Below are positions 32,631-33,062 of a stretch of 64,000 nt of DNA, piece by piece. The translations under genes were made by a program, and so were the position numbers. The stretch is from IMG/VR virus record IMGVR_UViG_3300042261_001312, positions 1 through 64,000 of that record; one strand, given 5' to 3'. The number at the start of each line of letters is the position of its first letter. Position 1 is the first letter of the stretch. The notes beneath the pieces are model-generated. The model saw only the letters and a program-made list of their open reading frames with translations, was not told the origin of the DNA and did not search any database.

Positions 32631-32954
32631 TTATTCAACTTCTTTTAATTCATACTTATTGATCATTTTATCAATTGTGTATTGAAATTTTTTAAGAGGA
32701 TGTTCTTCTTCTGAATAATGATTTTCAATTTGTGAAAAGTTCTTTCCTCTGGCTAAACCATATACTGCATACATGATACGTAATGTTTCTCTGTTTGATT
32801 GATGCATATAAGTTGCATCCTTTGCTTTCATTTCACGTTCACCTACAATATGTTCGGTTTTTCTTTGATTTTTGTAATAAATTTGCTTTGCAGCAAGTTC
32901 TTTAATGTCCGATTTTATTTTTTTAATATCAATTGCTTTAACTAAAGTTTCCAT
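32631..32954 (-). CDS. Conserved phage protein (LRIMYAVYGLARGKNFSQIE)
   Basis: Downstream of the amber mini-ORF; followed by hairpin at about 32606-32630. Confidence 0.75.
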   Translation of the reverse strand: METLVKAIDIKKIKSDIKELAAKQIYYKNQRKTEHIVGEREMKAKDATYMHQSNRETLRIMYAVYGLARGKNFSQIENHYSEEEHPLKKFQYTIDKMINKYELKEVE

Positions 32955-33026
32955 AATAATGTATTTTAAATTTATTTGTTATTTTTAATGCGTTTGTTTT
33001 TAATATTCCGATTTGAAATATCATTA

Positions 33027-33062
33027 TTATGGGGGTCTGATGTCAACCTATGTATTTTTCAT
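33027..33062 (-). CDS. Mini-ORF MKNT*VDIRPP with in-frame amber codon
   Basis: ATG AAA AAT ACA TAG GTT GAC ATC AGA CCC CCA TAA; starts 4 nt after the Pth2-like stop. Confidence 0.55.

Follow-up and report, generated by a model that had tools for sequence, protein, structure and literature searches.

We examined a 64,000-nt window of DNA (positions 1 to 64,000 of IMG/VR record IMGVR_UViG_3300042261_001312) that forms the start of a 327.7-kb, standard-code jumbo phage genome from lake water. All features described here lie on the minus strand. An amber suppressor tRNA of 72 nt with anticodon CTA is encoded at 33976..34047, as identified by ARAGORN and supported by the Rfam tRNA model (64 bits against a gathering score of 29). 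Comparison with the other 38 tRNAs of the phage gave no clear parent for this tRNA, and we used Q only as a placeholder when translating through TAG. No release-factor gene was found in the genome.

Downstream of the tRNA lies a Pth2-like (peptidyl-tRNA hydrolase 2 fold) gene (33067..33396), which starts ATG ACG TAG GTT and thus carries an in-frame amber at codon 3 (33390-33388). Its product matches Pfam PF01981 from residue 5 (26.4 bits against a cut-off of 23), its family profile hits the solved Pth2 structures 2zv3 (E 2.6e-10), 1wn2, 1q7s, 1rlk and 1rzw, and its AF2 model (pLDDT 93) aligns by Foldseek to solved Pth2 structures at TM 0.78-0.83 (0.81 for 2zv3). However, the NCBIfam equivalog models score only 23 bits against cut-offs of 82 and 126, and in the alignment to 2zv3 the G-K-G-K segment of the solved enzyme is replaced by A-G-Y-Q.

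A mini-ORF, MKNT-TAG-VDIRPP-TAA (33027..33062), begins 4 nt after the TAA stop of the Pth2-like gene (33069-33067). Its ATG is at 33062-33060, its internal amber at 33050-33048, its Arg-Pro-Pro codons at 33038-33030 (AGA at 33038-33036, last Pro codon CCA at 33032-33030) and its stop at 33029-33027, followed directly by two further in-frame stops, TAA and TGA (33021..33026). The next gene (32631..32954) starts 72 nt after the leader's stop and encodes a 107-aa protein (METLVK...), and is followed by an intrinsic terminator at 32612..32626 (GGGGGATTTACTTCCCC, then a T run). No terminator-like site was found on the minus strand between the Pth2-like gene and the 107-aa gene, which fits a single transcript, although none of the listed RNA runs contained the stretch. 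The sequence itself appears secure, as positions 32600-34100 are identical, with 0 differences, in assemblies of three DNA runs from two lake or freshwater samples, and the TAG codons are therefore not assembly errors.

The 107-aa protein has 542 homologs at E<=1e-3, all unnamed, on contigs up to 372 kb. We found no match in Pfam, PHROGs, NCBIfam or PADLOC, and a PDB sequence profile, Foldseek against PDB and AFDB clusters, and the ESM Atlas gave nothing informative beyond a helical hairpin. Its AF2 model (pLDDT 91.9) predicts three long helices. The protein has no match in the cultured-phage collection, in which a DNA search with our phage found only tRNA matches.

Conservation of the leader peptide and the start-codon helix

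To determine whether the mini-ORF is more than a chance occurrence, we first searched the entire 327,676-bp genome and found that AGACCNCCNTAR occurs only once, counting both strands. We then retrieved related loci only through the downstream 107-aa protein family, using an alignment of three homologs because a search with the window's protein alone found nothing. Of 73 distinct upstream regions, 63 carry CCNCCNTAA, each with an in-frame TAG within 36 nt upstream (63 in frame versus 8 and 7 in the other two frames), and share the architecture M-x(1-4)-STOP-x(2-4)-[R/K]-P-P-TAA. The remaining ten lack the canonical motif, some having RAP- or RSP-stop and some having lost the leader to an inserted gene. 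The initial annotation had described the mini-ORF as translationally coupled to the stop of the Pth2-like gene, but this proximity is frequent rather than constant: the upstream ORF is Pth2 in 32 loci and another gene in 22, and in one locus an extra gene sits between Pth2 and the leader, with the leader remaining beside the 107-aa gene.

Codon usage indicates that selection acts on the peptide. All four Pro codons are used at both Pro positions (CCA 29, CCG 12, CCC 11 and CCT 9 at the first; CCA 46, CCG 9, CCT 7 and CCC 1 at the last), the preceding residue is encoded by AGA in 43 loci, CGA in 10 and CGC in 1 or is Lys in 7 and Leu in 2, and length differences before and after the internal stop are whole codons. 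The terminal stop is TAA in 63 of 63 leaders, and a second in-frame stop follows directly in 43 of 63. However, the last Pro codon and the stop are also constrained by RNA pairing, so part of the conservation of PP-stop is at the RNA level.

In the window, the last Pro codon, the stop and the next 5 nt (CCATAATAATG, 33022..33032) form the 5' arm of a long-range helix predicted in both the RNAfold MFE and centroid structures. The 3' arm (CATTATTATGG, 32951..32961) is its exact reverse complement and contains the ATG of the 107-aa gene (32954-32952). The enclosed spacer (32962..33021) holds a small AT-rich hairpin, while in relatives it is 52-214 nt long with several variable palindromic hairpins. 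No known RNA family was detected in the leader. Although the window's own fold is only modestly better than shuffles (z -2.0, with 6 of 200 shuffles folding as well), the helix appears in the MFE of nearly every locus, and cognate duplexes average -13.8 kcal/mol versus -4.6 for shuffled partners (mean z-score -5.0, with 53 of 63 beating all 100 shuffles). In a fixed register, 88% of cells pair over 12 bp, compared to 32-71% in slid registers. At the variable positions 83% pair, compared to 70% when partners are swapped among loci (sd 1.6, maximum 77), and one position shows GC 24, TA 16, AT 10 and GT 3, indicating compensatory change. All three AUG bases are paired in 59 of 63 loci, and no Shine-Dalgarno-like tetramer lies upstream of this start codon in 63 of 63. 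The 5' arm begins 18 nt after the internal stop in 41 of 63 loci and at least 15 nt after it in 60 of 63, and starts at the last Pro codon in 46 of 63. In contrast, the distant 735-kb phage LR756501 has a leader, MS-stop-SRPP-stop, but no evident AUG-sequestering helix.

Covariation of the internal stop with the suppressor tRNA

We next compared the internal stop with the suppressor tRNA, which lies within a few kb of the module (anticodon CTA, or TTA in ochre lineages) in every related locus long enough to show it. The leader stop matches the anticodon of the local tRNA in each case (TAG with CTA in 40 loci, TAA with TTA in 3, none discordant). An early in-frame stop in the Pth2-like gene, found in all 13 first-found homologs and later in 55 of 55 loci as ATG-(1-8 codons)-stop before the domain, likewise matches the tRNA (38 and 3, none discordant) and the leader stop (51 and 4, none discordant). 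The ochre lineages lie at two or more separate places in the tree and use two different tRNA scaffolds, indicating at least two independent amber-to-ochre switches.

Interestingly, early-amber Pth2-like genes next to CTA suppressor tRNAs also occur in the cultured jumbo phages GAP32, fHe-Yen9-04, pT24 and XbC2. In these phages of Cronobacter, Yersinia, Xanthomonas and Tenacibaculum the gene is unannotated or truncated in the records. We found no RPP leader in the parts of fHe-Yen9-04, pT24 and XacN1 that we analyzed, the only hit being MPR-stop-VPP-stop in XacN1, in a stretch annotated as a gene on the opposite strand and probably a chance match.

A proposed translational attenuator and its relation to known systems

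The initial annotation proposed an arrest-like leader that reports amber suppression to the 107-aa gene, and our comparative evidence supports this proposal. We consider it reasonably likely, in the absence of RNA, ribosome or protein data, that the mini-ORF is the leader peptide of a translational attenuator that senses the phage's own suppressor tRNA. In this model, leader and gene share one mRNA, and the helix buries the AUG in a context with no Shine-Dalgarno sequence. A ribosome terminating at the internal stop (codon 5) would sit about 18 nt short of the helix and leave it closed, keeping the gene off. If the suppressor tRNA decodes that stop, the ribosome would run six more codons into Arg-Pro-Pro-UAA and dwell there because the Pro-Pro bond forms slowly and release after a C-terminal Pro-Pro is slow, covering the whole 5' arm and freeing the AUG for other ribosomes. 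The dwell could turn a weak read-through signal into many initiation events. A C-terminal Pro-Pro before a stop terminates poorly and is under-represented at protein ends (PMC3985003), although R-P-P-stop is not a demonstrated arrest motif. The leader would belong to a wider module with the suppressor tRNA and the Pth2-like gene, gated directly by the same stop codon at about codon 3.

Other explanations appear less likely. Any ribosome reaching the leader's UAA might unwind the helix and, with the stop base-paired next to the AUG, it or its 30S subunit might restart on the 107-aa gene without a special pause, RPP being incidental or only fine-tuning the process. In the conserved register the U of the UAA does pair with the A of the AUG, and long-distance pairing opened by upstream translation is likely what couples the MS2 coat-replicase and rpmI-rplT pairs. 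However, this explains neither the amino-acid-level conservation of the Arg/Lys and first Pro, which lie outside the helix and vary synonymously, nor the back-up stop in 43 of 63 leaders, and we consider it unlikely. Somewhat less likely still is tnaC-like transcription attenuation, in which a ribosome held at Pro-stop blocks Rho loading or terminator formation in the spacer. A short leader ending in Arg-Pro-stop before a long spacer resembles tnaC, engineered amber-in-leader switches work this way (PMC6412442), and spacers in relatives hold several hairpins, but these differ in sequence and number, no hairpin followed by a T run lies between leader and gene in the window, and the conserved, covarying element is the helix that buries the AUG. 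The two mechanisms could nevertheless act together.

We regard two further readings as very unlikely. The initial annotation also suggested that the mini-ORF generates peptidyl-tRNA substrate, and a 4-codon minigene ending at TAG could shed peptidyl-tRNA for the Pth2-like enzyme or sequester a host tRNA, with the codons after the TAG untranslated. The adjacent peptidyl-tRNA hydrolase-like gene, the role of Pth in handling dropped-off peptidyl-tRNA (PMC3985003) and the probable tendency of very short ORFs such as the lambda bar minigenes towards drop-off are compatible with this, but the codons after the internal stop are conserved in frame with synonymous changes, the internal stop tracks the suppressor anticodon, and the leader travels with the 107-aa gene rather than with Pth2. 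Alternatively, a noncoding promoter, operator or processing site might happen to contain ATG...TAG...CCNCCNTAA. Part of the motif is indeed RNA structure, and a sigma-70-like TTGACA-18-GATATT overlaps the mini-ORF in the window, but the TTGACA comes from variable, non-conserved codons, and third-position variation, the AGA/CGA exchange, frame-preserving indels and the concerted switch from TAG to TAA with the tRNA are not expected of a noncoding motif.

More tentatively, the suppressor tRNA of standard-code jumbo phages may be not a decoding aid but the signalling molecule of a small, self-contained translational regulon, with dedicated clients carrying the cognate stop within their first few codons (a directly gated Pth2-like hydrolase and a leader-controlled gene). 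Its output would report the balance between the suppressor and the host's release factors or tRNA-damaging defences, with the RPP-stop pause amplifying a deliberately weak read-through signal. This would answer the open question of what such suppressor tRNAs are for; the XacN1 authors could find no targets for theirs (PMC5852040). The attenuator itself would offer synthetic biology a compact natural part combining an 11-codon leader, a 12-bp helix and a suppressor tRNA.

As in the translational attenuation leaders and arrest peptides ermCL, the catA86 leader, SecM-secA, MifM-yidC2 and VemP-secDF2, a short upstream ORF here precedes an RNA helix that hides the next gene's initiation region, one arm of which a ribosome held at the leader's end would occupy. 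The proposed input, however, is not an antibiotic or a secretion force but the decoding of an in-frame stop by a phage-encoded suppressor tRNA, the leader is only 8-11 codons long, the proposed pause site is [R/K]-P-P directly before the stop, and the buried AUG has no Shine-Dalgarno sequence. The initial annotation likened the ending to RAPP/RGPP arrest peptides (ApdA, ApdP, ApcA; PMC10951233, PMC12992588), which likewise place an Arg followed by prolines at the C-terminal end of a small regulatory ORF upstream of the controlled gene. [quoted passage not shown] TnaC shares the Arg-Pro-stop ending and, in our model, control across a long spacer, but is a leader of about 24 residues that needs free tryptophan and conserved Trp12 and Asp16, ends in Pro24-stop and acts on Rho-dependent transcription termination, whereas this 11-codon leader has no Trp or Asp motif and its conserved element is a start-codon helix.

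In engineered switches (Liu, Qi, Yanofsky and Arkin 2011, reviewed in PMC6412442), a UAG placed in the tna or trp leader makes downstream expression depend on an amber suppressor tRNA. Those laboratory constructs act on transcription, while the leader described here is natural, is conserved across dozens of diverged phages and appears to act on initiation; full-text literature searches returned no natural leader peptide gated by nonsense suppression. Finally, in phages with stop-codon recoding (code 15 or 4; Lak and crAss-like phages; bioRxiv 10.1101/2021.08.26.457843), a phage-encoded suppressor tRNA, as proposed here, makes expression of genes with in-frame stops depend on the state of the infection. 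Our phage encodes such a tRNA, but its genome reads well in the standard code: coverage by ORFs of 100 codons or more is nearly the same with TAG as stop or as sense across all 10-kb bins, and gated starts are no more frequent for TAG (12 of 75) than for TAA (50 of 321). Ochre-suppressor lineages still end most of their genes in TAA (31 of 41), and the suppressor appears to serve a two-gene regulon rather than a recoded late-gene set.

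Gene order and genetic code around the mini-ORF

All relevant genes lie on the minus strand, where the mini-ORF reads ATG AAA AAT ACA TAG GTT GAC ATC AGA CCC CCA TAA (33062..33027) and is followed by two more in-frame stops, TAA and TGA. Its ATG lies 4 nt after the stop of a Pth2-like gene (33396..33067), and it ends 72 nt before the ATG (32954) of a 107-aa ORF, which is itself followed by an intrinsic terminator (32626..32612). About 600 nt upstream of the Pth2-like gene lies a tRNA with anticodon CTA (33976..34047), one of 33 tRNAs in the window. An HNH endonuclease gene (34454-35137, minus strand; PHROG 1271, E 3e-24) sits among the tRNA genes just upstream of this suppressor tRNA, and a 13-bp perfect palindrome (AAACTTGCATAAT...ATTATGCAAGTTT, 33434-33467) between the gene at 33456-33956 and the Pth2-like gene is probably the terminator or boundary of the upstream transcription unit. 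The window is the first 64 kb of a 327,676-bp jumbo phage record from lake water with 31% G+C, and stretch 32600-34100 is letter-for-letter identical in three independent assemblies. The genome has 39 tRNA genes (window 10015-63911 and genome 64712-321128), several of which are unusually long (85-93 nt: Asn, Gln, Pro, Ser), potentially due to introns; there is also a tRNA with anticodon ACA, and there are four 74-75-nt tRNAs called Leu that would lack the long variable arm. The host may belong to Bacteroidota, judging from the missing Shine-Dalgarno sequences and weak tRNA matches to Flavobacterium phages, although this is only a guess.

We found that the genome is not recoded. Coverage by long ORFs is almost the same whether TAG is read as stop or as sense, 17 of 259 long ORFs end in TAG, an ATG shortly before an in-frame stop is no more common for TAG than for TAA, and no release-factor domain is encoded. 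Two places nevertheless require read-through of TAG. One is the mini-ORF, and the other is the Pth2-like gene, which starts ATG ACG TAG GTT; its Pfam PTH2 match begins only two residues after that TAG, and the next in-frame ATG would remove 40% of the domain. Elsewhere in the genome record, three ORFs (279741-280937, plus strand; 57816-58493, plus strand; 73967-74671, minus strand) would fuse two substantial halves if a single internal TAG were read through (193+195, 130+94 and 133+100 codons, respectively), and these may be further clients of the suppressor or just neighbouring genes in the same frame.

The Pth2-like protein is a real member of the Pth2 fold, with a Pfam score above the cut-off, profile hits to 2zv3, 1wn2, 1q7s, 1rlk and 1rzw, and a Foldseek TM of about 0.8. 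It is divergent, though, and the NCBIfam equivalog models score far below their cut-offs, so its activity is not established. The 107-aa protein belongs to a family of 542 unnamed proteins on large contigs; it gives a confident all-helical model, no informative match anywhere, and is absent from cultured phages.

Conservation of the leader and of a start-codon helix

To avoid circularity, we collected relatives through the downstream protein only. An alignment of three homologs retrieved 11 loci from viral contigs and 80 loci from metagenome contigs (sludge, sediments, lakes and digesters), and these proteins are 43-66% identical to the window's. Of 89 loci with enough upstream sequence, 77 show the same small ORF 52-214 nt upstream of the gene, and 63 of them are distinct. 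The consensus is M-[K/R]-x-[T/L/K]-TAG-[I/V/M]-x-x-[R/K]-P-P-TAA, although shorter forms such as MI*IKKPP and MKH*VNRPP (asterisk, stop codon) also occur. Among the 63 distinct leaders, the stop is TAA in 63 of 63 and a second in-frame stop follows directly in 43. The first Pro codon is CCA in 29, CCG in 12, CCC in 11 and CCT in 9; the last Pro codon is CCA in 46, CCG in 9, CCT in 7 and CCC in 1; and the preceding residue is encoded by AGA in 43, CGA in 10 and CGC in 1, or is Lys in 7 and Leu in 2. The TAG is at codon 5 in 52 leaders, six codons follow it in 50, and the base after it is A in 42, G in 16, T in 5 and never C. A frame-blind check supports this, as every one of the 63 regions with CCNCCNTAA has a TAG in frame within 36 nt upstream (63 in frame, versus 8 and 7 in the other two frames). 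Variation falls on third codon positions, with an AGA/CGA exchange at Arg, and length differences come in whole codons, showing that these codons are read as codons across the TAG.

The leader is missing upstream of the 107-aa homolog in five related loci (L014, L015, L016, L029 and L077, in the roughly 300 nt upstream), where a gene ending ...STISEINT.KKW, resembling a homing-endonuclease DNA-binding tail, abuts the 107-aa gene instead. Sister loci L037 and L076 keep the leader, so these are recent losses. The same kind of leader also precedes a second downstream gene family, METxLK...GDFYK, seen in related locus L003 and in the 735-kb phage LR756501 (LR756501.1; locus L137, 9831-9854 and 9951-10367). 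In the latter the leader MS*SRPP* (ATG TCG TAG AGT AGG CCG CCT TAA) lies 96 nt upstream of a gene METTLK...GDFYKRK and just before two tandem CTA tRNAs. This gene is 37% identical to the one downstream of the leader in L003, so the leader serves at least two gene families, although a start-codon helix is not evident in LR756501.

We then folded each locus from the leader to the gene start, and found the same long-range helix almost everywhere: the last Pro codon, the stop and the following 5-10 nt pair with the bases just before and including the gene's ATG. In the window, CCATAATAATG (33032-33022) is the exact complement of CATTATTATGG (32961-32951), although the window's own fold z-score is modest (-2.0). 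Across the 63 loci, cognate arm pairs average -13.8 kcal/mol versus -4.6 for shuffled partners (mean z-score -5.0), and 53 of 63 beat all 100 shuffles. In a fixed register, in which the C of the last Pro codon pairs with the G after the ATG and the U of UAA pairs with the A of AUG, 88% of cells pair over 12 bp, compared to 32-71% in slid registers. The variable positions pair in 83% of cells, dropping to 70% when partners are exchanged among loci (sd 1.6, maximum 77 in 500 permutations), and one position shows GC 24, TA 16, AT 10 and GT 3. Related sequences are not independent samples, and the permutation and slid-register controls reduce this problem but do not remove it; in addition, the last Pro codon and the stop are constrained by both the peptide and the helix. 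Some sub-clades use other registers that still cover the ATG, for example TTTCCAT/ATGGAAA and ATGATTATTTCTT/AAGAAATAATCAT, and all three AUG bases are paired in 59 of 63 loci. None of the 63 genes has a Shine-Dalgarno-like tetramer, from which we infer that access to an unstructured start region is probably what limits initiation. The spacers of related loci (for example L008:2340-2500, L009:2360-2500 and L011:950-1080) hold recurring perfect palindromes (ATTCGCAAATTGCGAAT, CGTTACGCAAAATTGCGTAACG, TGATATCACAAATTGTGATATCA) in variable number, which could be RNA hairpins that bring the two arms together or binding sites for a protein, whereas the window's own spacer is short and has only a weak hairpin.

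Covariation of the internal stop with the suppressor tRNA

All seven loci first found through Pth2 carry a CTA tRNA within about 1 kb. Interestingly, five lineages (L023, L050, L093, L094 and L095/96) have TAA instead of TAG as the leader's internal stop, and where the flanks are long enough these loci carry a TTA (ochre) suppressor tRNA instead of CTA, with a Pth2-like gene that also starts ATG-x-TAA. Leader stop and local tRNA are paired as TAG/CTA in 40 cases and TAA/TTA in 3, the Pth2 leader stop and the tRNA in 38 amber and 3 ochre cases, and the Pth2 stop and leader stop as TAG/TAG in 51 and TAA/TAA in 4, with 0 discordant in each comparison. The switch from amber to ochre happened at least twice: L023 sits inside a well-supported clade of amber loci that includes the window, while L093-95 form their own clade, and the L023 ochre tRNA shares its acceptor stem with the window's amber tRNA, while the L050 and L095 tRNAs use a different scaffold. 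Genes in the ochre loci still end mostly in TAA (31 of 41), and suppression there must therefore be partial. The tRNA looks like a dedicated regulator rather than a recoding device.

Beyond this clade, we searched deposited phages with the Pth2-like protein by tblastn, which found 68 records. Of 11 lineages sampled, eight have a clear early in-frame TAG. The Pth2-like gene starts ATG TCT CAC TAG in Yersinia phage fHe-Yen9-04 (LR596615.1; L099:2450-2800), where it is not annotated, ATG GCA CAA TAG in Cronobacter phage GAP32 (JN882285.1; L133:5960-6300), ATG GCT CAC TAG in Xanthomonas phage XbC2 (OP292654.1; L139:7960-8300) and ATG AAA TAG in Tenacibaculum phage pT24 (LC168164.1; L100:2440-3400). 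In these four cultured jumbo phages the TAG is at codon 3-4, a CTA suppressor tRNA lies 2-4 kb away, and in the deposited records the gene is either missing or starts at an internal ATG. Among the huge phages, the gene starts ATG TCG TAG in LR756501, which has two CTA tRNAs in tandem, and ATG AAG TAG in LR756500, which also has one nearby, while for LR745206 (ATG AAC AAT TAG) and LR756504 (ATG ACA TAG) no CTA tRNA was found within the 6-kb and 8-kb flanks fetched, respectively. Where found, the CTA tRNA lies within about 1-4 kb of the gene. Mycobacteriophage Bxz1 (L132:1470-2230) has ATG TAG directly before the annotated GTG start of its Pth2-like gene, gp154, and a CTA tRNA, annotated as 'tRNA-like product', 300 nt downstream, but the GTG could itself be the start codon. 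XacN1 shows no early stop. Prevotella phage Lak-B7 is unclear: a tRNA with anticodon TTA (L135:5341-5413) lies 600 nt upstream of its Pth2-like gene, and an ATG AAT ATC TAA lies in frame shortly before a normal ATG. We found no description of this arrangement in full-text literature searches, and the authors of the XacN1 study state that no targets of its CUA suppressors could be identified (PMC5852040).

Two Pth2-like genes (L017:1050-1400 and L137:7986-8369) carry a second in-frame TAG inside the domain, which in L017 lies at ...IALEPG*VSQK. In L003 (1975-3318), a fragment of the Pth2 5' end (MRHTH*VKLVTITRKDLKAGY) is followed in frame by about 300 residues of unrelated sequence and then by a full second Pth2-like gene, which looks like an insertion of a mobile, endonuclease-like gene that duplicated the target.

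Proposed mechanism and comparison with known pause sites

The 5' arm of the helix starts 18 nt after the first base of the internal stop in 41 of 63 loci, and at least 15 nt after it in 60 of 63. Given that a ribosome probably protects about 13 nt downstream of the first base of the A-site codon, a ribosome terminating at the internal stop should not reach the helix, while one with the last Pro codon in its P site and UAA in its A site covers the whole 5' arm. We propose that read-through by the phage suppressor tRNA lets a ribosome reach Arg-Pro-Pro-UAA, and that a ribosome dwelling there sits on the 5' arm and exposes the AUG, although all of the evidence is comparative or predicted. One idea for why the gene uses a leader rather than an in-ORF stop is that a long-lived paused ribosome amplifies a weak read-through signal.

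Published work supports a dwell at this point, as a C-terminal Pro-Pro before a stop is released poorly, provokes tmRNA tagging and is avoided at protein ends (PMC3985003), and Pro-Pro bonds also form slowly. Several features fit a designed pause-and-terminate site, namely the back-up stop codon, the constant TAA-T context (though this context is also part of the helix), and a purine after the internal stop, which likely favours suppression in E. coli (Bossi, 1983; Miller and Albertini, 1983). The variants R-A-P-stop and R-S-P-stop (L076, L093 and L095; L018, L050 and L094) keep an Arg and a terminal Pro, which points to a pause at the termination step rather than a RAPP-type elongation arrest (PMC10951233).
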